NCBI RefSeq assembly: GCF_020745735.1
Contig: NC_083423.1
Coordinates: 50,902,001-50,966,000, forward strand
Length of the DNA stretch: 64,000 bases
Origin: Hemiscyllium ocellatum
Taxonomy: Eukaryota
Reading direction: 5' to 3'
The notes under the pieces were generated by a model. That model did not search any database. It saw only the letters and a list, made by a program, of their open reading frames with translations, and was not told the origin of the DNA. Position numbers and translations under genes: made by a program. Positions 573 to 55,422 of the stretch are shown piece by piece (the stretch's first letter is position 1; each line of letters opens with the position of its first letter).

Positions 573-721
573 TAAAAAATGAGGTCTGCAGATGCTGGAG
601 ATCACAGCTGAAAATGTGTTGCTGGTCAAAGCACAGCAGGCCAGGCAGCATCTCAGGAATAGAGAACTCCTGAGATGCTGCCTGGCCTGCTGTGCTTTGA
701 CCAGCAACACATTTTCAGCTG
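573..721 (-). mobile_element. PLE-derived fold-back (hairpin) element, family 1
   Basis: Perfect 54-bp inverted repeat (605-658/668-721) plus unpaired tail 573-604. Sequence matches the 3' end of the PLE at 31330-31418. Flanked by direct repeat CAGCTGGATAACTGG (558-572/716-730). Confidence 0.9.
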
Positions 722-1430: not shown

Positions 1431-1459
1431 TAATTTTGCAATACTCATTTACAATAGCA

Positions 1460-1670
1460 ACAGAAACTGATGGAGAAACATTAGCAGATATGGCAGCATC
1501 ATGGAGAGAGAATCTGAGTTAATGTTGAGTCCAGCATGATTCTTCTCCAAAGAAAAGGAGTCATAGGGACCAGAAATATTAAGCAATTTTCTCTCCATAG
1601 AATCCGCCAGACCTGCTGAGATCTCCAGTACTTTCTGTTTTTATTCCAGATTTCCAGGATCTGCAGTATT
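1460..1670 (+). mobile_element. Old, degenerate PLE-derived fold-back element
   Basis: Imperfect inverted arms (~1460-1547 / ~1550-1640) followed by the tail ..tttccaggatctgcagt, homologous to the tail ..tccagcatctgcag of younger PLE ends. Confidence 0.55.
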
Positions 1671-3299: not shown

Positions 3300-4430
3300 T
3301 GCCAATCAGCATCCGGGTCTCTCGCTATTGGTCAACAGGCAGCCAATCACACTCAGAGCGCCTTTCCATGATGTCATGCGCCGACAAGAGCTACGTTCCG
3401 TTTTTATTTGAAATTCATACTCCCGCTTGCTCTATCAACGCAGCTCCGCCATCACCGACAGCAACGAGCACAGCGCGGGCCGGGTTATTATTGCGGTGAC
3501 ATTACCGGCCGCCTGAGTCTCTACACATGGTATTCATACCGGAGATGAAAGTGACTGCGGCTGCTCCTGGTCCGGCTCCCGCGACTGACGCACCCACAGT
3601 GAGGAGGCGGGACATCCTCCTGTCGATCATGAGAACGGCTCACCTCCTTCTCCAATCAGAGGCGGGAACATCACGCATCCGTTCCAGAGGCGCGGCGCAG
3701 AGCCAATAGAAACGCGGTCCGTCCCCCGACACTCAAATGGCATCCCGACTGTCCCCCAATCAAAGACAACAATCAGCCGACCTCACGTGGCCCCGCCCCT
3801 TCTCCAATCAGAGGCGGTCCTCCCCTGTCAATCCCAATACGAAACGCTGTCAATCATGCCCCTTTCCCCCTACCCCGTTCCACCTCGAGAGTCGAAGCCA
3901 CAGTGAAGAGGCGGGGCCTGTCCTGCAGTTCGGGCTAGCCCCGCCCAAAAGGATTGTGCACTCCCGTCAGTCACATCCCGACCCCACCCCTTGAGGGGCG
4001 GGGAAGACCTTTGTCAATCATTGATTGCCGCCAATGTTGTCCCGCCCTCGGAAGTGATGTCACCTCGGTTTCTAGGGGGCGTTGTTTTTGTGCGAGGGAC
4101 GTGTGACGGAGGTGCGTCGCTTCCGGCAGACGTGGCGGCTGATGTGGATCTGGAGAGGCCGATGAGAATCAGCCGCCGTCAACATGATTTCCCTCACGGA
4201 CTCGCAGAGTAAGTGACCCTGCCCCGGAGTGGGGTGGGCCCTGGGCAGGTCGGAGCCGCCGTGGGACCGAGCTGTAAGGGGGAGGCCCTTTGGAGGATCC
4301 CCGGTGCCTGCGGCCTGGGCTCGGGCCCAGCCCGGCTCCAGGAAACAGCTGCATCCAGCTCGGCGCCGGGCACTTTGATGGCCTTGTTAAAGCAGGAGGC
4401 TGTCTCCGTGTGAGCACCGGGGGCTACTCC
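3300..4430. promoter_or_regulatory. CpG-island promoter of GOLT1B (possibly bidirectional)
   Basis: CpG-rich block around exon 1 in an otherwise CpG-poor window. CCAAT at 3302, 3343, 3652, 3703, 3756, 3804, 3834 and 4031. GC boxes (~3791, ~3940, ~3996), ETS sites CGGAAGT (~4049) and CTTCCGG (4120), E-box CACGTG (3784). Confidence 0.8.
4184..4208 (+). CDS. GOLT1B: GOLT1B coding exon 1 (MISLTDSQ)
   Basis: ATG in context gtcaacATGa; donor A|gtaagt at 4209. Confidence 0.93.
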
Positions 4431-8619: not shown

Positions 8620-9485
8620 TAAACCTTTTGAAAACCAGGGAATTACAGAACAGTGAGCTCCACATCACAGATCGGGAAAACTATTGGAGAAAATAATGAA
8701 GGTGAAAATTAATCTCCACTTGGAGAGGCAAGGTTTAATCAGATACAGGCTTTGTCAGAGGAGGGCAAAAGTGAGGACTGGATGCTGGAAACCAGCATTT
8801 AGATCAGAGTGGTGCTGGAAAAGCACAGCAGGTCAGGCAGCATTCGAGAAGCAGGAAAATTAATGTTTTGGACAAAAGCCCTTCATCAGGCTGTATTCCT
8901 GATGAAGGGCTTTTGCCTGAAACATCGATTTCCCTGCTCTTCGAATGCTGCCTGACCTGCTGTGCTTTTCCAGCACCACTCTGATGTAAACTTTGTCAGA
9001 GGGAGGTTCTATCTAACAAAGTTGAATTTTCTGAGGTGACCAGGTGTGTAGATGAGGATAGTGCTGTTGCAATAGTTTATATGGATTTCAGCAAAGCTTT
9101 TGACAAGTTCTCAGACGAGAAACTGATTCAGAAGGTAAAGCACATGGGATCCTGGGAAATTGGATCCAACATTGGTTTAGTGGTGGTAGGTTTTTGTACA
9201 ACCAGAGGATGGTATCCTATGTCATACCACAGGGATCATTGCTGGGTCCCTTTTATTATTTATGATACATACAAATAATATGGATGTGAATGTCGGGGAG
9301 AGGGTGATAAGTAAGTTTGCTGATGACACAAAGATTTGCCGGGAGGTTGATAGTGAGGCAGAAGGTCTTGGCTAACAGCAACATGTAGAAGAATTGGTCA
9401 GATGGGCAGATCAGTGGCAGATGGAATTTAACCTTGATAAGCGCGAAATGATGCAGTTTGGAGGAAATAACGAGGCAATGGAATA
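8620..9485 (+). mobile_element. CR1 LINE ORF2 (RT) fragment, decayed, interrupted by a PLE hairpin
   Basis: Motifs GFVRG.., VYMDFSKAFDK and ISKFADDTKI with stops and frameshifts. Confidence 0.8.
8765..8990 (-). mobile_element. PLE-derived fold-back element, family 2, with two back-to-back hammerhead motifs
   Basis: Inverted arms ~8798-8890/8898-8990, 7-nt loop, tail ~8765-8797. Target duplication CTTTGTCAGAGG(G)AGG at 8750-8764/8991-9006. CTGATGA core at 8899-8905 (+), mirrored on the minus strand. Confidence 0.88.
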
Positions 9486-9822
9486 GTCTTCAGAATTATA
9501 TGATCTAAGATATTTGCCCATAAGTGAGTTGCTTTCCTTTAGAAGTTTTAAAATAGTCTAGTTGCTAAGAAATCTTCAAGTATGCCTAAGTTGCAGAACA
9601 TTCATCTAATATCCTATTTAACATTGCAAGAATGATTATGCTTAGGGTAAATATATATTCCACTTGATAGAGCTTGCAGTTGGTAAGAAATAGACGTTAG
9701 GTCGATTCAGAATACAAATTTAGAACATGGGTTTCTAAACTGCATACAAGGTATTATACATGTACGGTTTTTTAGTTACTTCAGATCAGTCCTTTAAGCA
9801 ACCTTATTCTTTCTTTTTCCAG

Positions 9823-10001
9823 ATTTTATTTGTGGCAGGCTTGTCTTTTGTAATCGGCTTAGAAAGGACTTTCAGGTTCTTCTTCCAGAAACACAAAATG
9901 AAAGCTACAGGCTTCTTTCTGGGTGGTATTTTCGTTGTGCTGATTGGCTGGCCAGTAATAGGCATGGTTCTTGAAATTTATGGATTCTTCCTTTTATTCA
10001 G
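9823..10001 (+). CDS. GOLT1B: GOLT1B coding exon 3
   Basis: Acceptor tttttccag|; encodes ILFVAGLSFVIGLERTFRFFFQKHKMKATGFFLGG...YGFFLLFR; donor AG|gtaagg. Confidence 0.97.
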
Positions 10002-10414
10002 GTAAGGGAAATGTGAACTCTTACTGAGTTTATTCACCATGTGACTGTCCATGAAACTGTTCTCACGTTATGAATAGTTATTTTATTTTGAATAATTTAA
10101 TACTTAAAAAAATAATCTTCTAGTTCCAACAATAATTGGATGAACATTTAAAAGACTGGAAATTAGCATTTGAAGACTTGGGAGTTAGAATTCTTTGTTC
10201 AATTTAAATGACGTTGTTCAGCCAGGACTCCAATGCTAACCGCTTTTGTTTTGTTGCTTAGCAATAACTGTTATCTGGTCTTAGTATCTTTAAAGCAACC
10301 AATGTATTTTTTCAGATGTGTTCTTTCATAGGATCTGGATATCGCTGAATGAGTCAGCATTATTTATCCATCTTTCATTGTCCTTGCGAAAGTGTTGTTA
10401 ACTGCTTTCTTTGA

Positions 10415-10826
10415 AAGTCTTATGAGGAAAGGCTGAGAGACTTGAACCTGTTCTCATTGGAAAGGAGAAGGCTATGAGGGGATTTGGTAAAGACATACAA
10501 GATGATCAGAGGGTTACATAGGGTAGACAGTGAAAGTCTTTTTCCTAGGATGATGACGTCAGCGTGTATGAGGGGGCATAACTACAAATTGGTAGATTTA
10601 AGACAGATGTCAGATGCAAGTTCTTTACGCAGAGAGTGGTAAGGGCATGGAATGCCCTACCTGCTAACGTAGTCAACTCAGCCACATTAGGGAGATTTAA
10701 TCAATCCTTGGGTAAGCACATGGATGATTTGGGGATAGGGTAGGGCGACGAGCTGAAAATAGTTCACAAGTCGATGCAACATCGAGGGCCGAAGGGCCTG
10801 TTCTGCGATGTATTGTTCTATGTTCT
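10415..10826 (+). mobile_element. CR1 LINE 3' end (second family)
   Basis: YEERLRDLNLFSLERRRL.GDL..TYK motif; tail tgttctatgttcta. Confidence 0.75.
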
Positions 10827-10829
10827 AAC

Positions 10830-12200
10830 CACAGGAATCCCTGAGAAGTAGGTACGTACAGTGCTGTTAGGAAGTTAGTTCCAGCATTTTGACTCAGCGA
10901 CAGAGAAAGAATAACAGTATATTTCCAAGTCAGTATGGTGTGTTGCTTGGACAGGAACTTGCAGTTGACGTCCCCATTCATCTGCTTACCTTGCTCTTTA
11001 GATTTAGAAAGTGCTGTTAAAAGAGCTTTTGTGAATTTCTGGAGTGCTTTTAAATAACGCCCTCTGCTGCCACTGTGTGTTGACTGTAGATGGAGTGAAT
11101 TATTGAAGGTGATGGATGAAGCGCCAATCAATTGGGATGCTTTTTCAAGCTTCCTGAGTGTTGTTAGAACTACACTCCTCCAACAAGTGTGAAGTAATCT
11201 ATCACACCCATGACACATCCCTTGTAGATGGTGGACAGACTTTGGGGAGTCAAGCAGTGATTTATTTGCTGCAGGATTCCCAGCATCTGACCTACTCTTT
11301 GTCCATAATATTTATATGGATTATTAAGTTCAATTAATTGTCAATAATAGCCTCTAAGATGTTGATTTCACTCATGGTAAGGCCATTGAATGTCATAGGA
11401 GGTGGCTAGATTCTTTGGGAATGGGCATTGCCTGACAATTGTGTGGTGTGAATATTACTTAACATATATCAGCCCAAGCCAGGGTATTATCTAAATCTTG
11501 TTGCACATGGAGATAGATGGCTTAAGTATCTGAGAAGTTGTGACTTACGCTAAGTGTTGTGCAGTCATCAATGAACTTCCCCATTTCTGAACTTTTGATG
11601 GAGGGAAGGTAATTGTAGTAGCTGAAGATAGTTGGGCCTAGGATTCGAACTTGAGAAATCACTGTTATCCTGGGACGGAGGTGATTAAGTTTCAACAGCT
11701 GCTTGCATCACCTTTTGTGCAAGGTATGACTTCAAACAAAGGCGAGTCTTCCCCTGATTCCTGATAACTCAAATTGTCCTTGATGTCATGCGCAGTCAAA
11801 TGGTGCCTTGAAGTCAAGGGTAGTCATTCTCATTTCATCCATGGAGTTTAGCTTTTTGTCCATGTTTGGACCAAACCTGTACTGAGATCAGGAACTGAGT
11901 GGCCCTGGTGGAACCCAAACTGAGTATCAGTGTATAGGTTATTGCTAAGAAAGTGCTGTTTAATTGTATTTAACACCTTCTTCCATCACTTTGCTAATTT
12001 GGACTGATGAGGCAGTGATTGGCCAGATTGGAGTTATCCTGTCTTCTGCATACAGGATGTGCATGGGAAACTTTCTGCATTGCTGAATAATTGCTAATAT
12101 TACAAATGTACTGGAACAGCTTGGTTAGTGGCACACCTAATTCTGGAACACAGACCTTCAGCACAATTACTACTATATTGTCAGGGCCCATTTCCTTGGC
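10830..12200 (-). mobile_element. Decayed LINE (CR1/L2-group) RT and 3' region
   Basis: Minus-strand GPDNI..IVLK.C.PEL..PL.KLFQ...NL.N...IS is the classic pre-RT segment. Related fragments lie at ~285-500, ~6930-7500 and ~36220-36610. Confidence 0.7.
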
Positions 12201-12277
12201 AGCATCTGGTTTTTTTTCCCTTAATACCCAAAGTTACATTTTTTAAAATTCTGTTTCTTTCCCTTTTTCTCTGCTAG

Positions 12278-12359
12278 GGGTTTCTTCCCGGTGGTGGTCG
12301 GCTTTATTAGACGAGTACCTATATTAGGCTCTATTCTGAATTTACCTGGAATAAGCTCT
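12278..12359 (+). CDS. GOLT1B: GOLT1B coding exon 4
   Basis: Acceptor ctctgctag|; encodes GFFPVVVGFIRRVPILGSILNLPGISS; donor |gtaagt. Confidence 0.96.
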
Positions 12360-15300
12360 GTAAGTATTTGTGGTGTTCAGTGCATGTTAAACTACAGTCG
12401 TATCATTTTAAAGACCTTTTGTTAAAATTCAGAACTCTTAGTGGTGTGTTTAACAGATGGCTGTTCCAAAGACTACAGTCAGTAACTGGCGATGAATTAC
12501 ACAACCTATTGCTTAGTGAAACCATATGAAGTGGACTCTTAACTGCAAGGCAATAACTTAAAACAAACATAAATTGAATAAATATTATGTTATATTATTA
12601 AATATGTATAAAGTTGGAATTTACGAAGGATTTTACTGTATTCTAAGATTGGGATCTAAGATGTAAAAGTGTGTTGGTACATTTGAAAATAAGAGTCAGG
12701 GGAAGATGGCCCACAAGCTTATCCCATACTGTGATAGAGCAATCAATATCTTCACCATCAAATTCCTCCATCAACAATCATATCATTACTACAATAACAA
12801 ACAAGAGATTTATTTTTTTAAAACACAAATGAAATGGGAACTATGTTGAGGAAATTATTGTTGTATACCTTTTCATCTACAACAAAAATCTCTAATCTAA
12901 ATTTTATAACTAAGTGCATTTTGACATGAGTCTATTGACTCATGTCTACCCTTTGAAAGTCAAATGTATCACCCTCCATAAGAGGGACTGAAAACTTGGC
13001 CAAAAAGAACGAGTAAAGATTTAGCATGAACAAGGTCTTAAAATAAAAATATAGTGCTGTATTTTTTTTCTTTCAGTCAACCTAGTAACACATCTACATG
13101 TTTCACTTGCTTTTCTTGGGTAGTGGCATACATCAACATGTCCTTCTAAAGGTATCCCAAATAAAACTAGTTCTTTTGATGTGAGGTATCAAAGATTTAG
13201 GACCGATGTAGCAAAAGGTTTTGAGGTTTACAAAGTGTTGTAAATATGCGGAACAAAGACACCTAAATAGAGTAGTGGATGTGAGATTCTTTGCAATAGT
13301 TTGAGAAAAATTTCACCCTCCAGAAATCTCTGTGGTCAAGTACTCTGTTTCACACAGAAAGAATGATAACATAGCTGAGTTACTGAGAACTACCCATCCA
13401 TAAAACTACATTATAACTTAGTTGTATCTTTGAAGGTTGTGGTGTTTTTTTTCCCTTCTGGTATGGTTAAGTATTGTTGTCAACAATTGAATCTTTTACC
13501 TTAACTATGGCATCATTCTCAGGTAAATTTTGTGTATAAGTGGTTAATGGTGAAAGCAATTAAGAAAATGAGTATTTTAATATTTGTGGTTACTTTTTCA
13601 ATAGGAATCTCTTTCAGTTTGAGAGAATTAAATAGGTTTCATTTTTGAGTTATGTGAAATTAGATTATGGCTAGTATTGATCGGTTTGTTCCAGTGTTAA
13701 TTGACCTTCAAGCTCTATAATGGTGTTAGTAGGAGATAGAATTGTCATTTGAGGAAGCTGCTACAATCTTTGAAAGAAATTGTTTTTCATAGGTAGTAGA
13801 TGAGCTGAACTTTCTGATGTAGGTTGGAGTGCACAATTGTGATAAAAATGGAGGTTCCACAGCTGTCATCTATTTATCAAGAAAACTAGTATGTGACTTT
13901 GGTGCAGAATTTCAAATAGTCATCTTAATCTCTGGGATTTGGCTACAAACAGGTGGATTTGTTATTAGTGCTGTGGAAACGTTTAAAGTTGATTCTGCAT
14001 GAATGCTTGAAGAGATAGCACTTTAAACTTGTGGGTCCAGATCAGCTTTGTATTTTTGCTTTTGGCAATGCAATTATATAATTTATAATAGAATTACATA
14101 ATATGCCCTATCCAAAGAATTACCTAAATAACTGTGAGCTGCAAGTTAGTTAGAATTGACACAATGAGCCACAGTTTTTGGCAGTATTTATTTTGATATG
14201 CTGGTAACCTCTATAAAAGATTTGAGCATCCTTTACATCATTGATCCGAGTAGCTGGTCTTATTATTTTAGATAGGGGATTGAAGAATTTATGGCTGCAA
14301 ATTCATATTGAAGAGTTTTCAGATTTATAAAGTGAATTGTTCTAATGGAATATTGCTTTTCCACTTCTCTAAGTGTGTTTGACTCGTATCAGTAAATATT
14401 AAGGAACACCAGTCCTTCAAACGAAGAATTACATACACCTGGTAATGTCTAAACGTGAAAAATGTCCAAAAATTGAAATATTTCTTATGCATCAATAGTA
14501 CCCGGCTTTGTGTGTTGTGCATCAGCTAGTACTTATCATTAAGCTGCTTATTTAGTTGCGCACAGAGTTCTGTATTAACTATTACTTGGATGATAGTCAT
14601 ATTTTCAGGCATGTTAAGGATAAGATACATTAACTAAAATACAACTTCATTTTATTTTCTTTAAAGTGTAGTGGGCCCTCTCCGACTAATAGGAGTGCCC
14701 ATAGACTCTAATTCGAGAGTAGGTCTTGTTTGCTTCTACAACTCTGTTCCACACATGTGCTATATAATGGCAGACAGTTGGGCAAATTCACAAGAACAGA
14801 GAGACTGCCTGGACAGTGACTGCACAATGAGGAATTATTGAAAAAGCAAATTTTAAAGCGTGCCAATTACTCCAGATCAGCATCAGGGCTGGGACAGGGG
14901 GAGATATTTGAATGAAATCGAAGATGAACTTCAGTTCAACAATAAGGAAGACATGCCTAAGCTAGGTAATGATGATTCATTTATGTTTAATATGCCTTAG
15001 GATTGACATGCAAAAAGACAGAAGCAATGCAATTAAGCATTCTGAGCAGTTCACTTTGAAAGGAATTAGTGTTTTCATTCTTTACTATGCATTAGAGATC
15101 ACAAGTTAATTTGGTAAGTCAAGAAAGCCCTCAGAACTTTGACCTGCGTTCATCCTCGGGTTCAGCAGTTCCAGTTTGAATGTCATTGCTGTGCATCATC
15201 TAGTGCCTAGAGACAGATTAAAATATGAATCAAAGCAGAGATCCCATAGTGAATCAATTCCCAGTGGTTTTGAGGCGAAATTCAGAATGTAACGAGATGA

Positions 15301-16180: not shown

Positions 16181-17755
16181 TCCCATTTGGTTCTGAAGGA
16201 TTCCTGTCCAAAATATAAACTGCCTTTTCCCTTCAGAGGCTTTTGTATGTCCACTGTTCCCAACATTGCTTGTAATCATTTTTGTAGTGACTGACACACA
16301 TTGGGAAATAGAATTAGATTTTATTGTCACGTGTACTCAAGTCCAGGGATACAAAATGTACAGTGCACAAAGTCACCATTCCTGGCACCATCTTAGGCAC
16401 AGAGGTAATTAGGTAGGAAATCTAAGGTAAATCTGCCATGGTTTTACTGTGGACGTTCAGCTACTTATTGGCAGACTGGTGCATTTGAGAAAACTTCTAC
16501 TTGATCTTAAAAGATGTTTTGAATTGTAACAAATTATAATTTAGTTTATTTGATAGCACTGTTGCTTTGTGCCAGAAGTTGTGTACTTAAATACCATAAC
16601 ATGATTTTCGAATGGGTTAGATATTCAAGTGCAATGTTGTATTAAGTGAATGTTGAATTAAAACTACCGAATGTCTGAAGATAATTAAAGTAAGATTGTA
16701 TCTTCTATTGTAGCATATTTAAAGATCTGTGATGCTGTTTGAGATTGAAATATTGGTTAGATTACAATCAAAAATACCAGAAATGGATAATTGATCATTC
16801 ATCTTGTTATTTCCAATATCTTGCTGTGTGTGATTGACTGCTGAATTTGACAACAGAACAGCAACACTGACCATACTTCAAATATAATTTGTTGTTTGTG
16901 AAGTGTTTTAGAATGTGGTGAAGGTGTGAACTTTTACGCAGTTGCTAATCTTTTCCTTGTACTGCAGTGTTCTCATCTGCCTTTATGATATTCAGCATTC
17001 TGCATTTTAATAACTTTCCATTCATACAAATGAGGGGAAAATGAGTTGTGAATGATCACCAAGTGGAAATACAGTAACCAGCTCTGCATTATGATAGTCA
17101 AATGCTGCAGTAGGTTGAAATGGTATCGGTTAAAGTAGAAGAATTAATCACTGCAAAAAACATTTTTTAAATAAGAGTGACCTTTCTAATTGGAGTAATC
17201 CAAACCACACAGCCTTTGACTGATCAGTAACATATTGACCTTATCAGAATTTCTGCTATGTAGTCAGACAAAGTGTTTTACACTGAAATCCAATTTATAT
17301 TGACTTGATTGTGTTCTACCATTGCGTGGTAATCCACATTATCTTCCCTACACCTTTGTAAAAAGCCCTTCTAAAATGATAGTTTCTGGAGGTCCACATT
17401 TAAAATCTCAAACTCTCAGTTCACAGCTCCTTTTATGTTTAAACCATCCACTGCTATGCATTCTGTTAATTTTTGCCTTTTGTTGAAATGAACCTGCAAG
17501 AAAATGTGTTTACATAATCAAGCCATCTAACACTTTTGAATAATGAATTTACTGGTGCTATGCGACTTGTTAATAATTGTTCCGTTAAATATCTTTAAAG
17601 CTGACGATATCATAAAGGAGGCTGAACATGAAGTACGTATCTTGTTATATTTTCATAATGGTCTTGTTTGCGTAACCTGGAGGAAAGACTGCTACCTAAA
17701 ACAGTATAGTTTAGCTTTCTTTTTAAGTAGTGATATGTTGTGATCTTAAAAATGT

Positions 17756-17959
17756 AAATGTGTTGCTGGTCAAAGCACAGCAGGTTAGGCAGCATCTCAG
17801 GAATAGAGAATTCGACGTTTCGAGCATAAGCCCTTCATCAAGGGCTTATGCTCGAAACGTCGAATTCTCTATTCCTGAGATGCTGCCTAACCTGCTGTGC
17901 TTTGACCAGCAACACATTTGCAGCTGTGATCTCCAGCATGTGCAGACCTCATTTTTTAC
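17756..17959 (+). mobile_element. PLE-derived fold-back element, family 1 (young)
   Basis: Perfect 80-bp inverted repeat (17756-17835/17840-17919) with 4-nt loop and tail 17920-17959. Arms identical to the pLTR of the intact PLE. Target duplication ATCTTAAAAATGTA at 17743-17756/17962-17975. Confidence 0.93.
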
Positions 17960-19517
17960 ATATCTTAAAAATGTAGGCAAGATAAGAAGTGGTACATGGA
18001 GCAATGACCTAGGTCCTTTGCCTCTAGTTGGAACTGCCTCACAATAGGTAGTTTATAACAGAATTGCAAAGAAGCTTTGTCTGCAGTCTGCCATCTATTG
18101 AAATTAATAATAGAAAATAGCCATTGGCACACCCACAATTTTCCAACAAGCTACATGCTGGATTAACCCCTCCGAGCCCCAAAAAAAGCAGAGACTGGTC
18201 AAAAATTTAGGTCCTGGTTCATTAAAGTATGGATTTTTAAGGTGAAAATACCATGACCTTGATTTTCATTGGACTGGATGATATATCCCATGTACTCTTC
18301 TTTGGGATTTGTTTCTGAAATAGTTTTTTTTTAAATCCAATTGTAAGAGCTGGTCTCAAAGTCTTTACTGTTTCTAACTGAAATGAATTTGCTTTCCCAA
18401 TCTATGCCTGGTTTCAGCTGTGATAACAGTATTGGAGTACTTTAGCTTTTAGATTTTAGTGCAGAAGGGTTAGTAACAAATTTAAATACCAATGATGTTC
18501 ATTTTTAATGCTTAGTGCAAGTATTAGTACCACTGCCAGTTTCTTCTAATAAGCAATTCAGCACTTAACCTATTAATTTGAAATGTATGGGCTGAGATGC
18601 TTGACCGAAGTATCCTTGAGTCATACATCTATCTTGATCTGGAAAATAGGCTCGAAACCTTAGGGATGTTGTTTACTCTAAGCTGTTGGGAATTGCACTG
18701 TAATTCCCCTTTCTATCTTCCCCTACTATAGATTAGATCTGAAAGCTTACTGTGCAGAAAATAATGAATAAAGGTCTGTCCTGTTGTTCTAATCAAGCTT
18801 GTGACAGTCTTTTTATCTTTGTTGCTGTTACATTGGATTATGGATTTCTGTACTTTTACATTTTTAATTTAAAATCTGAAGACTAACTACTTGAAAGCAA
18901 TTGAGAAAAATTGGTGGGGATTCATCAAAGAATTCAACTAGCTTCTACTTTTGTAAGATTTATTATCATGTGGGAGGTTAAGTACAATTCAGTAAAGGAG
19001 GAGACCAATGTTTACAAAGTGAAAGATACTAACCATAGAGATGAATTGCTTGAGAGGTGTACTATGGCTGTCTAAGATATTAAGAATGAGAATAATGAGA
19101 ATAGCATGAAAACAAAAGGGAACCATCTGGAAATAATCAGGTCAGGCAGCATCGATGGATAGAAGAACAGAATTAACGTGTCAGATTAATCTGACATACT
19201 AAAAATGCAGGAAAGTGAAATCAGTCACTCCTTCAAAACTTTTAAATTACTTAATATTAACAGTTCAAATAAGGCTCAAGGATATGTTTTGGATTTAACC
19301 TGCTATTGAGATCATTACATGCAAAGAGCTCCCATTTGGAAAGTGAGTTAATTGTATTCATTTGATATTAGACAGCGCAACAATGAGAGCTTTGGATATG
19401 CATTTTAATTGTCACTGATTTAAGCCAACTGTCACAAAGTCTTTAAATATTAAACCAAATAAATTTTCAGCTCTTGGTTGTATTTTAGCTAATTACAGTT
19501 TCCTTTTGTTTTTGCAG

Positions 19518-28726: not shown

Positions 28727-28896
28727 GTTTCTAGGGGCTAAAGGTGGCAAAGGAAATGGGGACAGAGAAGGAGTATGATGTTGAGATAGCGAATCAGCCA
28801 TGATCATGTTGAAATATGAAATGGGCTCGATGGGCTGAATGCAAATGTGTTGCTGGTCAAAGCACAGCAGGTTAGGCAGCATCTCAGGAATAGAGA

Positions 28897-28932
28897 ATTC
28901 GACGTTTCGAGCATAAGCCCTTCATCAGGAAC
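28897..28932 (-). ncRNA. Minimal hammerhead ribozyme motif (inverted pLTR copy)
   Basis: Exact reverse complement of 31290-31325. Confidence 0.75.
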
Positions 28933-29026
28933 AAGAGAGAGAGAGCCAAGCCGGCTGAGATAAAAGGTAGGGAGGAGGGACTAGGGGGAGGGGCGATGGA
29001 GGTGGGATAGGTGGAAGGAGGTCAAG

Positions 29027-31156
29027 GTGAGGGTGATAGGCCGGAGTGGGGTGGGGGCGGAGAGGTCAGGAAGAGGATTGGACTCCTCCACCGGCAAGCC
29101 GCCCGAACCAACCAACCCAATCACCCCGTGGCTCAACACTTTAACTCCCCCTCCCACTCCACCGAGGACATGCAGGTCCTTGGACTCCTCCACCGGCAAG
29201 TCCACCCCTCTCACCCACTCCAACCTCTCACCCTCAGAACGTGCAGCCCTCCACTCCCTCCGCTCCAATCCCAACCTCACCATCAAACCCGCAGACAAGG
29301 GAGGCGCGGTGGTAGTTTGGCGCACTGACCTGTACACCGCTGAAGCCAAACGCCAGCTCGCGGACGCCTCCTCTTATCGCCCCCTTGACCACGACCCCAC
29401 CTCCCACCACCAAACCATCATCTCACAGACCATCCAGGACCTCATCACCTCAGGGGATCTCCCATCCACCGCCTCCAACCTCATAGTCCCACAACCCCGC
29501 ACCGCCCGTTTCTACCTCCTGCCCAAAATCCACAAACCTGCCTGCCCCGGCCGACCCATTGTCTCAGCCTGCTCCTGCCCCACCGAACTCATCTCCCAAT
29601 ACCTCGACACGGTCCTGTCCCCTTTAGTCCAAGAACTCCCCACCTACGTTCGGGACACCACCCACGCCCTCCACCTCCTCCAGGATTTTCGCTTCCCCGG
29701 TCCCCAACGCCTTATTTTCACTATGGACATCCAGTCCCTGTACACCTCCATCCCCCATCACGAAGGACTCAAAGCCCTCCGCTTCTTCCTTTCCCGCCGC
29801 ACTAACCAGTACCCTTCCACTGACACCCTCCTTCGACTGACTGAACTGGTCCTCACCCTGAATAACTTCTCTTTTCAATCCTCCCACTTCCTCCAAACTA
29901 AAGGAGTTGCCATGGGCACCCGCATGGGCCCCAGCTATGCCTGCCTCTTTGTAGGATATGTGGAACAGTCCATCTTCCGCAACTACACTGGCACCACCCC
30001 CCACCTTTTCCTCCGCTACATCGATGACTGTATCGGCGCTGCCTCGTGCTCCCACGAGGAGGTTGAACAGTTCATCAACTTTACTAACACCTTCCATCCC
30101 GACCTGAAATTCACCTGGACTGTCTCAGACTCCTCCCTCCCCTTCCTAGACCTTTCCATTTCTATCTCGGGCGACCGACTCAACACAGACATCTATTATA
30201 AACCGACTGACTCCCACAGCTACCTGGACTACACCTCCTCCCACCCTGCCCCCTGTAAAAACGCCATCCCATATTCCCAATTCCTTCGTCTCCGCCGCAT
30301 CTGCTCCCAGGAGGACCAATTCCAACACCGCACAACCCAGATGGCCTCCTTCTTCAAGGACCGCAGATTCCCCCCAGACGTGATCGACGATGCCCTCCAC
30401 CGCATCTCCTCCACTTCCCGCTCCTCCGCCCTTGAGCCCCGCTCCTCCAACCGCCACCAAGACAGAACCCCACTGGTTCTCACCTACCACCCCACCAACC
30501 TGCGCATACAACGTATTATCCGCCGCCATTTCCGCCACCTCCAAACGGACCCCACCACCAAGGATATATTTCCCTCCCCTCCCCTATCAGCGTTCCGCAA
30601 GGACCACTCCCTTCGTGACTCCCTTGTCAGATCCACACCCCCCACCAACCCAACCTCCACCCCCGGCACCTTCCCCTGCAACCGCAGGAAATGTAAAACT
30701 TGCGCCCACACCTCCACACTCACTTCCCTCCAAGGCCCCAAGGGATCCTTCCATATCCGCCACAAGTTCACCTGTACCTCCACACACATCATCTATTGCA
30801 TCCGCTGCACCCGATGTGGCCTCCTCTATATTGGTGAGACAGGCCGCTTACTTGCGGAACGCTTCAGAGAACACCTCTGGGCCGCCCGAACCAACCAACC
30901 CAATCACCCCGTGGCTCAACACTTTAACTCCCCCTCCCACTCCACCGAGGACATGCAGGTCCTTGGACTCCTCCACCGGCAGAACACAACTACACGACGG
31001 CTGGAGGAGGAGCGCCTCATCTTCCGCCTGGGAACCCTCCAACCACAAGGTATGAATTCAGATTTCTCCAGCTTCCTCATTTCCCCTCCCCCCACCTTGT
31101 CTCAGTCGGTTCCCTCAACTCAGCACCGCCCTCCTAACCTGCAATCCTCTTCCTGA
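29027..31156 (+). CDS. PLE reverse transcriptase + GIY-YIG endonuclease; genuine PLE coding sequence starts ~29201 and the N-terminus is missing
   Basis: Motifs IKPADKGG, FYLLPKIHK..GRPIVS, TMDIQSLYTSIP, GVAMGTRMGP, LRYIDD, LPFLDL, YYKPT, Cys linker PCNRRKCKTC, and IIYCIRC..C..LYIGETGR..ERFREH. No stop codons. The first ~58 codons come from the inverted pLTR and rearranged sequence and begin at GTG. Confidence 0.9.
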   Translation: MRVIGRSGVGAERSGRGLDSSTGKPPEPTNPITPWLNTLTPPPTPPRTCRSLDSSTGKSTPLTHSNLSPSERAALHSLRSNPNLTIKPADKGGAVVVWRTDLYTAEAKRQLADASSYRPLDHDPTSHHQTIISQTIQDLITSGDLPSTASNLIVPQPRTARFYLLPKIHKPACPGRPIVSACSCPTELISQYLDTVLSPLVQELPTYVRDTTHALHLLQDFRFPGPQRLIFTMDIQSLYTSIPHHEGLKALRFFLSRRTNQYPSTDTLLRLTELVLTLNNFSFQSSHFLQTKGVAMGTRMGPSYACLFVGYVEQSIFRNYTGTTPHLFLRYIDDCIGAASCSHEEVEQFINFTNTFHPDLKFTWTVSDSSLPFLDLSISISGDRLNTDIYYKPTDSHSYLDYTSSHPAPCKNAIPYSQFLRLRRICSQEDQFQHRTTQMASFFKDRRFPPDVIDDALHRISSTSRSSALEPRSSNRHQDRTPLVLTYHPTNLRIQRIIRRHFRHLQTDPTTKDIFPSPPLSAFRKDHSLRDSLVRSTPPTNPTSTPGTFPCNRRKCKTCAHTSTLTSLQGPKGSFHIRHKFTCTSTHIIYCIRCTRCGLLYIGETGRLLAERFREHLWAARTNQPNHPVAQHFNSPSHSTEDMQVLGLLHRQNTTTRRLEEERLIFRLGTLQPQGMNSDFSSFLISPPPTLSQSVPSTQHRPPNLQSSS

Positions 31157-31289
31157 CCTCTCCGCCCCCACCCCACTCCGGCCTATCACCCTCACCTTGA
31201 CCTCCTTCCACCTATCCCACCTCCATCGCCCCTCCCCCTAGTCCCTCCTCCCTACCTTTTATCTCAGCCGGCTTGGCTCTCTCTCTCTT

Positions 31290-31325
31290 GTTCCTGATGA
31301 AGGGCTTATGCTCGAAACGTCGAAT
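31290..31325 (+). ncRNA. Minimal type I hammerhead ribozyme motif in PLE pLTR
   Basis: GUUC-CUGAUGA-A-GGGC(UUAU)GCUC-GAAA-C-GUC^GAAU: intact core, 4-bp helix II, 4-bp helix I, helix III reduced to the palindrome ACGU, as established for PLE minimal hammerheads. Confidence 0.82.
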
Positions 31326-31560
31326 TCTCTATTCCTGAGATGCTGCCTAACCTGCTGTGCTTTGACCAGCAACACATTTGCAGCTGTGATCTCCAGCATC
31401 TGCAGACCTCATTTTTTACTCGATGGGCTGAATGGCCTAATTATAGTCATAAAGATATACAGCACAGAAAAAGACCCTTCGGTCCAACTCAGCCATGCCA
31501 ACCAGATATCCTAACTTAATCTCATCCCATTTGCCAGCACTTGGCCCATATCCCTCTAAC

Positions 31561-32547
31561 TCAAGATTACAGTGGTGCTGGAAAAGCACAGCAGATCTGG
31601 CAGCACCCAAGGAGCAGGAAAATCAACATTTTGGGCAAAAGCCCTTCATCAGGAATGAGACTGGGAGCCTTAGGGGTAGAGAGATAAATGGAAGGGTGTG
31701 GAGCTGGGGAGATGCGAGCTGACAGTGCAATAGATGGACGGAGGTGTGGGTGAAGGTGATAGGTCAGAGGGTGGAGTGGATAGGTGGAAAAGAAGATTGG
31801 CAGGCAGGACAGGTCATGAGGACTACCAAACCAGCGCCCACACCTCCCTCCTCACCTCTGTCTAAGGCCCCAAAGGAGCCTTCCATATCCATCAAAGTTT
31901 CACCTGCACTTCCAAACATGTAATTTATGTATCCATTGCTCCCGATGCAGTCTCCTCTACATTGGGGAGACGGGATACTTCTCGCTGACTAGGTCAGAGA
32001 ACATCTCCAGGATATCTACACCAATCAACATCACCGAATATTTCAACTCCCCCTCCCACTCTGCCAAGGGCATGCAGGTCCTGGGCCTCCTCCACTGCCA
32101 CTTCATCACCACCCGATGCCTGGAGGAAAAATGCCTCATCTTCCGCCTCAGGACCCTTCAACCTCAGGGCATCAATGTGGACTTCACCAATTTCCTCATT
32201 TACCCTCCCCCCACCTTATCCCAGTTCTAACCTGCAGCTCAGCATCGTCCTCATGACCTGTCCCACCTGTCAATCTTCCTTCCCACCTATCTGCTCCACC
32301 CTTCTCCCTGACCTATCACCTTCACCCCACCTCCATCCACTTCTTGCATCTCAGCTACCTTCCCTCCAGGCCCACCCCCCTCCCATTTATCTCTCCACCC
32401 CTGAGGCTTCCAGCCTCACTCCTGATGAAGGGCTTTTGCCCGAAACATCAATTTTCCTGCTCCTCTGATACTGCCTGACCTGCTGTGCTTTTCCAGCACC
32501 ACTCAAATCTTGACTTTAATCTCCAGCATCTGCAGTACCCACTTCTG
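31561..32547 (+). mobile_element. Truncated PLE (family 2-like) with inverted pLTRs, nested in a CR1 tail
   Basis: Inverted arm 31561-~31823, decayed GIY-YIG fragment, then 3' pLTR with CTGATGA at 32422 and tail 32514-32547. Duplicated target ccatatcc(ct/tc)ctaa at 31546-31559/32548-32561. Host CR1 tail spans 31445-32645. Confidence 0.87.
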
Positions 32548-33189
32548 CCATATCCTCCTAAACCCTTCCTATTCATATACCCATCCAGATACCTTTTAAA
32601 TGCTGCAATTGTACCAGCCTCCACCACTTCCTCTGGCAGCTCATTTCACCTCACTATTGTAGATTTACAGCAAGGCTACACTTAAAATCTATTCACTTAC
32701 CTGTCTCTGTGCTGTGATCTCTCTCACACAGGTTCTCCAAGATCAGTTGTGAATTTCACTGTTTGTTAAGTTTTCCTAGATGCACTCCAATATCCAGTGA
32801 TACATGAATTCAGCAGCAAAGGCAGTAACTGCACAAGTTCACTGCTGTGTCAATTAGTAGTATAGGTTTCTTTCTCTCTCTCTCTCTCCTGCACTAACCA
32901 TATGCTGCCTATTGTCTGTCCTTCTCCCTTTTAAAAGTGCCTTTGTTTTGACTTTTTTCTCCAAAGTTCCAAAACAATGCAACAGCATATAAATGAGCAA
33001 TTGCTGCCCCTGGAATTCCAGAAAATCATCTCCAACACCTAAAATACCTCAAAAAAGAAGCAACTCTTAAAGCCAGAATTTTTTTCCCATCCTCCATCTT
33101 GAATTGCCTTCTACTCCTAATTCCAACATTCCTAAGTAACCAAAAGTATTGTTATTTACTTTAAAGCTTAGGTATGGACAAAAAATTAG

Positions 33190-34611: not shown

Positions 34612-34740
34612 GGAGAAAGTGAGGACTGCAGATGCTGGAGACCAGAGTTGAAAAATGTGGTGCTGGAAAAACACAGCAGGCCAGGCAGCATCCGAGGAGC
34701 AGGAGAATCGACGTTTCGGGCATAAGCCCTTCTTCAGGGA
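34612..34740 (-). mobile_element. Solo PLE 3' end with hammerhead motif (CUGAAGA variant)
   Basis: Minus strand reads CTGAAGA-A-GGGC(TTAT)GCCC-GAAACGTC (34737-34710) followed by the usual pLTR end and tail. Degenerate direct repeat at 34594-34611/34741-34757. Confidence 0.8.
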
Positions 34741-36220: not shown

Positions 36221-37196
36221 GGGCAAGTGGGGAGAACTCTGTCACACCCCTGATTTGTGCCTTGCAGAGGATGGACAAGCTTTGGGGAGTCAGGAGGTGA
36301 GTTCCTCACTGCAGTATTCCTAGCCTCTAAACTGCTCCTCCAGCCATTGTATTTATGTGGCAAATCCAGTTGAGTATTTCTGGTCAATGCAAACCCCCAG
36401 AATGTTGATAGCAGGGATTCGGGGACGTTGATCCCATTGAATTTAAAGGGGTGGTGGTTAGGTTTTCTTTTCTTGAAGATGGTCGCTGCCTGGCATTTGT
36501 GTGGCATGAAGATTACTTGCCACTTTTAGCCCAAACCTGAATATTGTTCAGGGCTCGTAGAGGAGATAATTGAATTGACCAGTTATAAATAGGAAAAAGG
36601 TGTTACTGTATCCTTTCAAGTAAGTGGATTTATTACCCATCCTTAATTGCTTTTTGATAGCACTTAGGAGTCAGTCATGTTGCTGTGGGTCTGAATTCAC
36701 ATATAACCCAGACCAGGTCAGGGCAACAAATTTGCATTAATAATCATTCAGTAGTACAAAACTTGAGTATTTCTGATAAGGACATACTTTATTGAAACTT
36801 TTGTATCCTGAAGAATGAACCAGAATTTGGCTGTCATCTATTTTGTGGAGTTGGAACAGACAATGTGATGTCTTTCTGTCTACAAAGAACGTGGCCCAGT
36901 GTATTAATATTTGTAAAAATTAAAGGTAAAGTTGTCATGATCCTACTGGACCACAGAACTAATCTCTCATTAAAGAGAAGCAACAAGTGGTAGATTAAAC
37001 CGAGGGTCACCATCTCAGGCAAGGGGAAAGGTTGAAAAGGAAAGTTCTTCTGATAACATCAGCAGGTACAGGAATTGAACCCACCCTGTTGGCATCATGC
37101 TGCATTGATTAATACATGATTTGGAGATGCCAGTGTTGGACTGGGGTGTACAAAGTTAAAAATCAGGTTATAGTCCAACAGGTTTAATTGGAAGCA

Positions 37197-37231
37197 CACT
37201 AGCTTTCGGAGCGACGCTCCTTCATCAGGTA
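37197..37231 (-). ncRNA. Minimal hammerhead ribozyme motif, family 3
   Basis: UAC-CUGAUGA-A-GGAGC(GUC)GCUCC-GAAA-G-CUA^GUG: intact core, 5-bp helix II, palindromic helix III AGCU. Confidence 0.78.
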
Positions 37232-37708
37232 ATAGTGGAGGGCTCGATCGTAACACAGAATTTATAGCAAAAATTTACAGTGTGATGTAACTAAAATTAT
37301 ACATTGAAAAATTGATTGTCTGTTAAGCCTTTCATCTGTTAGAATACAATGATCGTTTCACTTCTTTCATGTGTAAATCACAAAACCCTTCTTTTTAAAG
37401 TTGCATTCTTGGGTTAGCTGCTAACAATGGTGATAGCTAGACAATATGTTGAAGGTGTTGGCCCCCCGTGTTCTCTGTCTAAGACCTGATGTTTAGATTG
37501 ATTCTAATCTAATAAGTGAGATAACAGTGTTTTACATAAATTCATGCAGTTTTTGAGCTCAGAGTTCTACATGAATGTATGCAGTTTTTGAGCTAAGTGC
37601 AATGTAACTCTGCAATAAAAATTCACCCCACAAAATATATGTGTGCATGTGGGTTTTTGTCTGTCTGTGTCTGTCTGTCTGTCTGGGGTGGGGGTTGTGA
37701 GTGTGAGG

Positions 37709-37710
<2 letters not shown>

Positions 37711-37782
<72 letters not shown>
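37711..37782. repeat. (GT)n microsatellite, ~36 units
   Basis: Pure GT run inside the PLE 3' region. Confidence 0.97.
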
Positions 37783-37786
<4 letters not shown>

Positions 37787-37907
37787 AGTGTCTTAAGTCT
37801 GCGAGGGGGTGCATGTGTGAGCGTGGGAGTGTGTGTGTCTATAAGGGTGTGTGTGGGTGTCTGTGTGCACATCTGTGTGTACCTGTGTCCGTGTGTATGT
37901 GAGAGAG

Positions 37908-37910
<3 letters not shown>

Positions 37911-37954
<44 letters not shown>
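37911..37954. repeat. (GT)n microsatellite, ~22 units, preceded by (GA)n
   Basis: Directly visible. Confidence 0.95.
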
Positions 37955-37956
<2 letters not shown>

Positions 37957-39953
37957 TGCAATGGTGATCACCTGTAATGTGACATGAACCCAAGGTCCTG
38001 GTTGAGGCCCTCCCTATGGGTACCGAACTTGACTGTCAGCCTCTGCTCGGCTACTTTCCTCTGCTGTCTGTCCTGAAGTCCACCTTGGAGGATGGTCACC
38101 CAAAGGGCCGAGGCTGAATATCCTGGACCACCGAAGTGTTCCCCAACTGGGAGGGAACCCTCCTGTCTGTTGATTGTTGTGCGGTGCGCATTCATCCGTT
38201 GTCGTAGCCTATGTTCGGTTTCCCCAATGTACCATGTGTCCAGGTATTCTTGCCGCAACGTATAAGATAGACAACGTTGGCTGAGTCACATGAGTACCTG
38301 CCATGTACAAGGTGGGAGGTGTTCCCAAGCGTAATAGTGGTATCTATGTCCACAATCTGACATGTCTTGCAGCGTCCACCATGACAGGGTTGTATGGAGT
38401 TGTCCTGAGAGCCGGGCAGTTTGCTACAAACAATGATATGTTTGAGGTTTGACTGTTGTTTAAAGGCAAGTAGTGGAGGTGTGGGGAAGGTCTTGGTGAG
38501 GTGCTCATCCTCATTGATAATGTGTTGCAGGTCATGAAGAACATGGCGTAATTTTTTAGCCTCTGGGAAGTACTGAACAACAAAGGGTACCCTGTCAGTT
38601 GCAGCACGTGTCTGTCTCCTGAGGAGGTCATTACGGTTCCTTGCTGTGGCACGTCGGAACTGGCGGTCGATGAGTTGAGCATCGTACCCCGTTCCTGTGA
38701 GGGCATCCTTGAGTACTTCCAGATGTCTGTCACATTCCTCCTCATCTGAGCAGATCCGGTGTATGCGTAGGGCTTGTCCGTAGGGAATGGCTGTTTTAAT
38801 ATGTTTTGGGTGGAAGCTGGAAAAGTGTAGCATTGTGAGGTTGTCTGTGGGTTTGCGGTAGAGCGTGGTGCTGAGATGTCTGATTAATACATGTAGCTTC
38901 ATTTTAAATCTTAAATTTGTTGTCAGTGTAATTCCTTGCTCCAATTAGAGAATAATGTTAGAGACTATGTTGCAGATTTTGCAAGCACAGGATGCTTGGT
39001 ACAATCACTACTTTACTTCTGCAAATATCTGAAAGGATATGCTGTTTGCTACAATGTTCAGACCATACCTAGTATAACACTGGCAATGAAATTCATATAC
39101 CACATTGCTCATTTAGGGGATAAGTAGAGCATCTTTTTAGCTTGACTGCTTTAGAATTGTTGCTTTTCCCTTTGAATTGGTATTCTTCTGAATTGTCCCG
39201 ATGAGTATGAGATAAAAACATTTTGACAAAATATATATATATTTTTAGCAGTGCTCAAATTTCCATTAGTGAATCAGATATTGCCTGTGATAATTGATGG
39301 TAGTTGTGGTCTTTTACTGAATTAGCTTTTCATTCCATATTTTCCTTTTGGTTAATTCATTGAATTCAAATTCCACCAGACTTGAACCTCTCTCCCTACT
39401 TCATTAATTAATTGGCTGCAAAGATCTTTGAGACGCCCTGCAGACATGGAAAAGTACTATACATGCAAGTTCTGGGTTACTGAAATATCAGAACCATACA
39501 CACAGAAGGGAAAAGAAGTAGCTTTAAATGAAGCCACAAATATTGCCGTACAACAACACTCACATTATACAAAGCGAACTTGTTGAATTAAAAGCTATTT
39601 GTCACAGGAAGAATTAGGTTAATAGAAATTTGACAGTAAATTGGAAAGTAAATAGATCAGACTATAATATTTTTACAGGGGACAGAATAAATACATAAGG
39701 AAGAAGAGTAGCAAACTTAGTAAATGAAACCAGATACTGTTGAAAGTATAGAAGAATAAATTCAAATAAAGTCACTTATTAGAGAACAAAAAATAATAAC
39801 GAAATATTTTTAATAGTGGGGTTTTGCTACAGATTTCACAAAGGAGAGAAAGTAGATTAAGACTAATTATATTGCTCTCAGAGATTTTGATTACTAACAT
39901 TGATTGGGAAGGGAGTAAATAGAAAAACTGGAATGGAACGCCTACAATAGGCA

Positions 39954-51328: not shown

Positions 51329-52184
51329 GTAAGTGAACCCTGAATTAAACTGGCCTCTTCACAGCGCTGCTCCAAGTTGGATTTTGGATTTGTACAGTAT
51401 TTATTTCTTAAATACTTGCTTTAACAGGGGTTCAAACATTGACATTTTGCCTAGTCCTCGTTTCTGAATGCAGAAATAAGCTTCGACAGATGCTGCCTGA
51501 CCTGCTGAGTTTTTCCAGCAGTTCCTGATTTCTATTATCCGTGGGTCTTTCTTTCTAAGGGTCTACTGAACTTGAGGCGTTAACCGGTTTTTCTCGCTCT
51601 CTCTCTCTACTGATGCTGGCAGATCCACCGAGTTTCTCCAGCACTTTCTGTTTTCTGTTTGTGATAGGCTAGTAAGGATTGGAACAGTAATATTTTTATG
51701 ACTGCCCGGAGACTGCAGAGTTCTGTCGCATTAATTATTATAAAATTTATCATATAAATTACGAATATCATGTTTTGGTATAACTATTGCATAACTGTGT
51801 GCATTATCATAGTGGGTTAAACCTAATAGTTTTGGTGTTTTTTAAACAATGAAATCTAAATACCGTTGATCCCATAATAGTTGATGGACTGATTGAGCTT
51901 TATTAACTTCCTCGCGTTCATATGCGATAAATCCTTCCGATAATAAACCATCTCAGGTCTGTTTAGTTTAGTTTTAAACTGTGGAGGACAAATGGAATGC
52001 CCCCTCAACTGACCGAGGTTGAGAAGTAATGAGTCAACTGGGAGGTGGGTTTGGAAAGGCCGGGAAATCGAAAGGGCACAATTTTAAATTCATTTGCGCT
52101 GGTCTTGCCTGACTACAACTGCCGAGTGTGTTTGATAATGGGAATTAAAGATTTCCCATTTCCGGTGAGCCAGCCAATATTCCT

Positions 52185-52325
52185 AAAGTCCGGATGAAGG
52201 GTCATCTCGACTCGAAACGTTAGCCTGCTCTCTCCCCACGGCTGCTGCCTGACCTCTTGTGATTTCCAGTACTTTTTGTTTTTGTTTTTTTAGTACAGAT
52301 TCCAGCATCTGCAGTAAGTTGCTCC
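52185..52325 (+). mobile_element. PLE-like 3' end with mutated hammerhead motif in SPX intron 3
   Basis: CgGATGA-A-GGGTC(ATCTC)GACTC-GAAACGTT at 52191-52221, followed by gctgcctgacct..ttccagcatctgcagt. Older related fragments at ~51485-51660. Confidence 0.65.
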
Positions 52326-55213: not shown

Positions 55214-55422
55214 GGAGAAAGTGAGGACTGCAGATGCTGGAGATCAGAGCTGAAAATGTGTTGCTGGAAAAGCGCAGGTCAGGCAGCATCCAAGGAGCAG
55301 GAGAATCGACGTTTCGGGCATGAGTCCTTCTTCAAGAAGGGCTCATGCCCGAAACGTCGATTCTCCTGCTCCTTGGATGCTGCCTGACCTGCTCGCTTTT
55401 CCAGCAACACATTTTCAGCTCT
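55214..55422 (-). mobile_element. PLE-derived fold-back element (CUGAAGA-type family) in SPX intron 5
   Basis: Inverted arms 55246-55332/55334-55422 with a 1-nt centre; tail ~55214-55245; partial duplication TAATAGAGRAA at 55200-55210/55422-55432. Confidence 0.88.

Follow-up and report, generated by a model that had tools for sequence, protein, structure and literature searches.

Insertions of Penelope-like elements (PLEs) are heavily truncated at the 5' end, often carry an adjacent inverted, 5'-truncated copy, and have a tail of 30–40 bp at one end (PMC8557442, PMC3846280); the inverted 5'-truncated copy and the one-sided 30–40-bp tail go back, as quoted in PMC8557442, to Evgen'ev and Arkhipova (2005). 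A minimal hammerhead ribozyme of the dimer type is known for PLEs, and dual minimal hammerheads lying 100–700 bp apart on opposite strands have been mentioned in passing for Schistosoma mansoni (both PMC4209133). In 2024, the Poseidon protein of Anolis carolinensis (PAc) was found to cleave and extend both strands in vitro, with reverse transcription from two internal start sites, the stretch between which makes up the tail; cleavage by the ribozyme was not needed in vitro (PMC11167929). Here we compare with these systems a set of short hairpins (~200 bp) in 64,000 nt of the genome of the shark Hemiscyllium ocellatum (GCF_020745735.1, contig NC_083423.1, positions 50,902,001 to 50,966,000 of the forward strand; hereafter the window, numbered from its first letter), with the hairpin at 17743–17975 (hp17) as our principal case. 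We conclude that the hairpins are real, and that they are the minimal extreme of the known PLE insertion architecture, not a new kind of element. Two regularities go beyond the initial observation: a zone of about 11 nt at the CUGAUGA box of the hammerhead in which complementary DNAs (cDNAs) end, and the presence of one tail per insertion. We found no explicit description of hairpin-only PLE insertions as a class in the open-access literature.

hp17 is bounded by two copies of an exact 14-nt direct repeat, ATCTTAAAAATGTA, which form its left and right target-site duplications (17743–17756 and 17962–17975) and are the only two in the window, against 0.09 expected by chance. A repeat search called an inverted repeat of 83 nt at 99% identity with 4 nt between its halves (17753–17835 and 17840–17922); because the sole mismatch sits in the overlap with the target duplication, the true arms (17757–17835 and 17840–17918) are 79 nt long and 100% identical, around a 4-nt loop. 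Read along the plus strand, a tail-less antisense arm (17757–17840) enters the loop, CATC(A), and stops at U4 of the CUGAUGA box, and a sense arm (17840–17918) begins at the final A of the same box. The sense arm is followed by a tail (17919–17961) of about 41 nt (17919–17959) plus two extra nucleotides, AT; nothing comparable lies between arm and duplication on the left side. As single-stranded DNA, hp17 folds with -110 kcal/mol (z = -25.6). Its target is AT-rich; those of the insertions at 0.6, 8.8 and 28.8 kb are not clearly so.

The source family of hp17 is represented in the window by a coding copy at 28842–31419 (plus strand). By blastn within the window, the left arm of hp17 (17757–17840) is 100% identical to 28844–28927, and its right arm and tail match 31297–31419 at 98.4% over 123 nt; the tail itself shows one mismatch to the last ~40 nt of this element, which end at 31419. 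The 28.8-kb element is young and 5'-truncated, with a hammerhead at 31294–31321. A tail-less inverted arm (28842–29080) leads into a sense body and a tail that runs to 31419, between duplicated target sites of 15–16 bp. Its first 239 nt are the perfect reverse complement of 31142–31380, the sense copy being longer than 2.2 kb, and its last ~40 nt have no counterpart at the left end. The open reading frame (ORF) at 29027–31153 matches RVT_1 and GIY-YIG. Over 636 residues it shares 54% identity with an 889-residue relative, and the best-matching database proteins are those of Chiloscyllium punctatum, Rhincodon typus and Stegostoma tigrinum. Judged from its sequence, the element is a canonical endonuclease-positive PLE. 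The initial annotation had taken the arms of hp17 as identical to an intact PLE at 28.8 kb. The identity stands, but the element is incomplete. Full-length relatives align with it only from their residue 257 onwards; the N-terminal ~250 residues, a quarter of the protein, are missing, and the apparent ORF of 709 codons is partly spurious. Its first 48 codons run through the inverted arm (to 29080) and an internal duplication of 101 bp (29098–29198 = 30881–30981). hp17 is as young as this coding copy of its own family.

In hp17, both strands carry an antisense copy of the PLE end directly after the target duplication, as expected for target-primed cDNA. We read the tail-less arm as a cDNA primed from the plus-strand nick and the sense arm as the complement of a second cDNA. 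Such a structure could also arise if a single cDNA folded back, primed itself and was copied, its end being captured by the other side of the break, as in the self-priming idea put forward for the rotifer Penelope; near-perfect symmetry and small loops would then be automatic, and palindromes at inverted junctions have been interpreted in this way (PMC3846280). However, the loop CATC and the following A of hp17 continue the antisense reading of the tail-less left arm (compare 28926–28930), and the tail is on the other arm. Since a tail-less cDNA that folds back makes no tail, and a tailed one that folds back reverses the polarity of the loop, two separate cDNAs are needed, and folding back is contradicted for hp17 unless 4–5 loop bases match by chance (about 1/256 to 1/1024). 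Nor would anything make a folded-back copy end precisely at the proximal start site. The same process is impossible for long elements with unequal arms, namely the 28.8-kb PLE (239 nt against more than 2.2 kb), a full-length PLE from another genome described below, and a second long two-ended PLE at 31572–32548 (plus strand). In this last element, an inverted arm of 233 nt (31572–31804) is separated by 23 nt of filler from a sense copy of 720 nt that carries the tail (31828–32548). On its sequence, hp17 is the product of two cDNAs primed on opposite strands, one from the distal and one from the proximal start site, with an overlap of about 1 nt at the join.

Inverted repeats were sought without bias over the whole window, with arms of 30 nt or more and a spacing of at most 400 nt, and seven pairs were returned. 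Six are in hairpins described here, the 55-kb hairpin accounting for two of these, and the seventh is formed by the 3' end of the 28.8-kb element and the inverted arm of the next element. The 8.8-kb hairpin (hp8.8; 8765–8990, minus strand) has its tail at 8765–8797, arms at 8798–8890 and 8898–8990 with 90% identity, and a 12-bp target duplication, CTTTGTCAGAGG; its 7-nt loop comprises 4 nt of filler and 3 nt continuing the tail-less arm, the same polarity as in hp17. The 55-kb hairpin (hp55; 55214–55425, minus strand) has its tail at 55214–55242 and arms at 55243–55332 and 55334–55425 (97–98%), with a loop of 1 nt inside a CUGAAGA box. Its target duplication, TAATAGAG adjoining the hairpin, is short (8–11 bp) and ambiguous because a second exact direct repeat of 10 nt, TTTGACAAGG, occurs at 55190–55199 and 55460–55469, 10–35 nt outside hp55. 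The 0.6-kb hairpin (573–721, minus strand) carries its tail at the left (573–604), has 100% identical arms (605–658 and 668–721) and a 15-bp target duplication, CAGCTGGATAACTGG. Eight of the nine nucleotides in its loop continue the tailed arm, as a single folded-back cDNA would need. The 1.5-kb hairpin (1453–1668, plus strand) is old, shows no duplication and belongs to the family B end lineage; its arms (1453–1526 and 1575–1645) are 73% identical over 75 columns of a local alignment that none of 500 shuffles equalled, its tail lies at about 1646–1668, and a profile of family-A ends detects both arms in the correct orientation. Ends of this second lineage are also found at 46140–46240 and 52180–52316, with further fragments at 51483–51520 and 51600–51651. 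The 52.2-kb fragment seems to begin at a degenerate CGGATGA box and has TCCTAAA on both flanks.

These five hairpins have arms that align to the 3' untranslated end of the elements in the window that encode reverse transcriptase (RT) and GIY-YIG domains, and the tails claimed for one side only are indeed confined to one arm in each (~41, 32, 33, 29 and 23 nt for hp17 and the 0.6-, 8.8-, 55- and 1.5-kb hairpins). Their ends derive from at least four lineages, the identity of their arms ranges from 100% down to 73%, and no two junctions in the window are alike. Folding back of one cDNA fits the loop of the 0.6-kb hairpin. In hp17, hp8.8 and the zebra-shark hairpin described below, however, it is the tail-less arm that runs on into the loop or spacer, and the folding back of that arm cannot create the tail; we regard this process as very unlikely to be how these hairpins arose.

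We think it probable, instead, that each hairpin records a single PLE integration: the DNA was cut in both strands with a stagger, and the element RNA was reverse-transcribed with each of the two ends as primer. On the sequence, each strand opens, next to the target duplication, with an antisense copy of the PLE 3' end; the copy begun at the distal start site carries the tail of ~30–40 nt and that begun at the proximal site is tail-less. Both cDNAs would stop early, in most cases at the 5' edge of the hammerhead, within the ~11-nt zone; the two 3' ends would be joined with an overlap of 0–2 nt or a few filler bases, and each cDNA would be completed on the other as template. What results would be two head-to-head copies, each shorter than the pseudo-LTR terminal repeat (pLTR) of these elements, with nothing between them. 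The hairpins would then be dead-end by-products, made again and again by active PLE families, and not copies of one another. The initial annotation had likewise proposed a two-ended integration, and this is supported by the polarity of the loops, by the same rule in the long elements and by the in vitro data on PAc (PMC11167929). Its further suggestion of repeated formation de novo fits the distinct junctions, the different end lineages and the range of arm identities (100%–73%), but is not proven by them.

Several points weigh against our reading. Two independent cDNAs that end 1–8 nt apart in four hairpins need some common stop, and the 0.6-kb hairpin could equally well have come from the folding back of a tailed cDNA. 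Read in one window, the junctions also remain compatible with hairpins or arms that are copied as units. Finally, the choice of start site is equal between the strands in vitro (PMC11167929), which by itself does not predict a strict rule of one tail.

The shared stop can be placed on the hammerhead. A descriptor scan and an alignment both identify a minimal hammerhead in the family-A ends, in which CTGATGA, a 4-bp helix II with a 4-nt loop, GAAAC and GTC stand in register in one alignment. The Rfam hammerhead models gave no match in the window, either at the gathering threshold or at E <= 10, which is expected because the motif is of the dimer-type minimal form. We counted the ends of the cDNAs from the predicted cleavage site, +1 being the first base after GTC, so that the CUGAUGA box occupies -28 to -22. 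The tailed and tail-less arms end at -22 and -27 in hp17, at about -26 and about -25 in hp55, at -29 and -32 in hp8.8, and at +4 and +12 in the 0.6-kb hairpin. A solo copy of 128 bp with a tail and a 15-bp duplication at 87% (34612–34739, minus strand) has a single arm that ends at -30, its 5' truncation lying 2 nt upstream of a CUGAAGA box, and the 1.5-kb hairpin folds at the equivalent position of its own lineage. The initial annotation had assigned each hairpin its own fold point. The fold points do differ by nucleotide, yet they are not independent, as four of the five PLE hairpins fold within a zone of ~11 nt at the CUGAUGA box. Most cDNA ends lie upstream of the ribozyme cleavage site and not at it, and run-off from a cleaved ribozyme accounts for a minority of them at most. 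Candidates for the cause of the stop zone are a block that depends on protein or fold, a trimmed RNA end and a transcription start. Two side candidates were rejected. Joining of the cDNAs by self-annealing through the palindrome of helix II is ruled out as helix II is complete in both arms and the fold lies 6–12 nt beyond it, and an ordering rule by which the tail-less cDNA is always the longer holds in four cases and fails in three or four.

At the outer ends, the tail-less arms stop within a window of ~8 nt just past a CACATTT/CACTCTG stretch, and the tailed arms stop at a precise point 30–40 nt beyond that boundary; both boundaries coincide across hairpins, long elements and solo copies. 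All of the two-ended insertions examined (9/9) have exactly one tail. Had the start site been chosen independently on each strand, the probability of such a pattern would be no more than 0.5^9. The inverted arms of the two long PLEs, which are ~70% identical, stop at 29080 and 31804, positions homologous to 31138–31142 and ~12–18 nt before the stop codon of the ORF. This third discrete cDNA stop is probably the canonical pLTR boundary.

These boundaries also bear on the idea that longer PLE copies with inverted arms lost their interiors after insertion. Such copies exist in the window and palindromic DNA is prone to deletion, but symmetry to within 1–8 nt would be required in five independent cases, the deletion points would need to coincide with the zone in which solo copies, never inverted, have their ends, and hp17 is as young as the coding copy of its family. 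We therefore hold interior deletion to be highly improbable.

Building on two-ended integration, a more specific proposal can be made, which we offer tentatively and think rather unlikely to hold in full: that PLE integration has a programmed hand-over point at the 5' edge of the hammerhead. A dimeric ribonucleoprotein would always prime one distal and one proximal cDNA, both would run to the CUGAUGA box of the uncleaved ribozyme, and their 3' ends would be joined there. The hammerhead would then serve as a structural stop or docking element and not as a cutter.

The same zone reappears in other genomes. In a locus of the zebra shark, Stegostoma tigrinum, we found a hairpin (3802–4001) with 75-nt arms at 80% identity and a tail of ~38 nt on one side. 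A duplication of 14 bp at 86% flanks it, and its spacer of 28 nt continues the tail-less arm across the hammerhead. The locus also has two solo copies of ~130 bp that begin at the box (797–926 and 18416–18542). A 21-kb whale-shark locus contains PLE ends and no hairpin. In a eukaryote unrelated to sharks (ENA ERZ25067862), a full-length PLE at 9313–12662, young and apparently complete, encodes a protein with 53% identity to the shark ORF. A 12-bp duplication, ATTATGATAGTG, flanks the element, which has a perfect 149-nt inverted repeat with a 55-nt tail on the inverted arm only. This is the full-length element that cannot be a fold-back, since its tailed inverted arm of 148 nt meets a sense body of 3.2 kb. 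Its head-to-head junction lies at U4 of a CTGACGA box, so the junction zone is the same there and in the zebra-shark locus. At 18390–18430 of the zebra-shark locus, where one solo ~130-bp copy stands between 15-bp duplications, CACCTGACTGTGCCT, the 5' junction consists of 8 nt of antisense hammerhead box and 8 nt of filler, followed by sense sequence from U4. It is a miniature version of the hairpin junction.

Solo copies with this boundary invite another explanation, in which the arms are unit-length mini-elements. Short RNAs starting at the CUGAUGA box, and transcribed from any pLTR, solo copy or hairpin arm, would be mobilised in trans by the PLE protein in the manner of short interspersed elements. 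The RNAs would carry the binding and start sites of the RT, a hairpin would be rebuilt at each two-ended integration, and the class would be self-propagating although every junction is unique. The same 5' boundary is indeed seen in the solo ~130-bp copies with duplications (34612–34739, and 797–926 and 18416–18542 of the zebra-shark locus), and it starts the upstream direct pLTR of the full-length PLE from the unrelated eukaryote. Moreover, the minimal template in vitro extends from the start sites back to a point shortly before the hammerhead cut (PMC11167929), and pLTR sequences are enough for mobilisation in trans in rotifers (PMC3846280). However, nothing points to a start of transcription at the box, the start of Penelope in Drosophila virilis is further upstream, with an intron that ends at helix I (PMC4209133), and a coding source suffices for hp17, which is identical to the coding copy of its family. 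The inverted arms of both long elements also stop elsewhere, at the positions homologous to 31138–31142. On this evidence, we judge a class of mini-elements unlikely. Two further solo copies, at 40.5 and 63.3 kb, first seemed to be truncated at the hammerhead because their BLAST alignments stop there; we rejected them, as both alignment and raw sequence continue upstream.

A last alternative is that the hairpins are miniature inverted-repeat transposable elements (MITEs) of a DNA transposon, or palindromic artefacts of assembly. Size, terminal inverted repeats and flanking duplications are similar to those of MITEs, and Rfam returns weak microRNA-precursor matches only. Against this, the arms match the 3' end of an element with RT and GIY-YIG domains, the tail makes the termini asymmetric, and the duplications vary from 8 to 16 bp. 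Ages range widely, and a hairpin of the same build occurs in the assembly of another species. We consider that this alternative has next to no chance of explaining the hairpins, and it is contradicted for five of the six.

The sixth, at 48410–48609 with no strand assigned, is the only one to which this alternative could still apply. Its arms (48451–48505 and 48537–48592, 82%; in the whole-window scan, 48451–48502 and 48541–48592, 83%) are accompanied by 41 extra nucleotides to the left and 17 to the right, a 22-nt direct repeat at 82% encloses the whole, and its origin is unproven. By blastn it has no match elsewhere in the window, it shows no similarity to the PLE-end profile and no hammerhead in the descriptor scan, and inspection by eye brought out no clear resemblance to the 3' terminus of the divergent 37-kb PLE. 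The initial annotation had described all six hairpins as one PLE-derived architecture that resembles MITEs and yet is retro-derived; both statements apply to five and do not extend to this one. The 37-kb PLE itself, at 36980–38944 on the minus strand, is of another lineage, with ~30% protein identity to the 28.8-kb PLE, and its hammerhead (37200–37228) has the helix III palindrome AGCT instead of ACGT.

Sub-threshold microRNA-precursor matches were obtained with Rfam at 600–726, 8867–8921, 48469–48574 and 55284–55383. We read them as a generic resemblance between hairpins, and they show how such hairpins could pass for microRNA genes. At a density of about one per 10 kb, the hairpins would be called MITEs by structure-based tools and two opposite Penelope fragments by homology tools. 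Perfect stems of 80 bp that lie in transcribed regions may also be sources of double-stranded RNA.

If our reading of two primed strands is true, the hairpins are in vivo fossils of the step left open in vitro, the resolution of the two extended strands. It would follow that both strands are primed in real integrations, that the start sites are used one per strand, and that abortive cDNAs mostly reach the ribozyme's 5' border without going on to the cleavage site. The role of the hammerhead in PLEs, as well as the resolution step of integration, could be tested by tabulating junctions across a genome. The density in the window would imply, by extrapolation, hundreds of thousands of hairpins per shark genome; if the hammerhead edge is moreover a hand-over point, these would amount to a natural record of the process.

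How, then, do the hairpins stand among known systems? With MITEs they share size, terminal inverted repeats, flanking duplications and the potential to form a hairpin. Unlike MITEs, they are retro-derived, with asymmetric ends, a duplication of no fixed length and arms that match the 3' end of a retroelement. Twin priming of L1, reportedly proposed by Ostertag and Kazazian in 2001, is said to involve a second primer that anneals internally on the same RNA. It resembles the hairpins in that both ends of the break prime reverse transcription and a 5' part is inverted; however, the inverted segment of L1 is a different part of the element, whereas the two arms of a hairpin are copies of one and the same 3' segment, made from two dedicated start sites.

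Metazoan non-LTR retrozymes, like the hairpins, are short, non-coding, hammerhead-bearing and derived from the pLTRs of PLEs (PMC7229834; bioRxiv 10.64898/2026.07.22.740005). Retrozymes, however, are direct tandem repeats with complete type I hammerheads and circular RNA, whereas the hairpins are inverted, occupy single sites and have duplications. In hp17, hp55 and the 0.6-kb hairpin, the ribozyme core is either truncated or missing; that of hp17 is incomplete because its sense arm starts at the last A of the CUGAUGA box, and with arms beginning at U4 and A9, C3 is missing from both.

The closest relationship is with PLE integration itself. The independence of PAc from hammerhead cleavage matches the position of hairpin cDNA ends, mostly upstream of the cleavage site. 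The in vitro work on PAc did not trace how the two cDNAs are joined, and the strands did not differ in their use of start sites, whereas the genomic insertions use one site each in 9/9 cases. Compared with canonical PLE insertions, the hairpins have no ORF and no direct pair of pLTRs, and both of their copies measure 55–125 nt, against the ~240-nt inverted pLTR of the long elements in the window. An RT and GIY-YIG source can be named for every hairpin except that at 48.4 kb. In all else the architecture is that of canonical PLE insertions: head-to-head arms from the pLTR region with the hammerhead in them, one tail, a target duplication of variable length and heavy 5' truncation.

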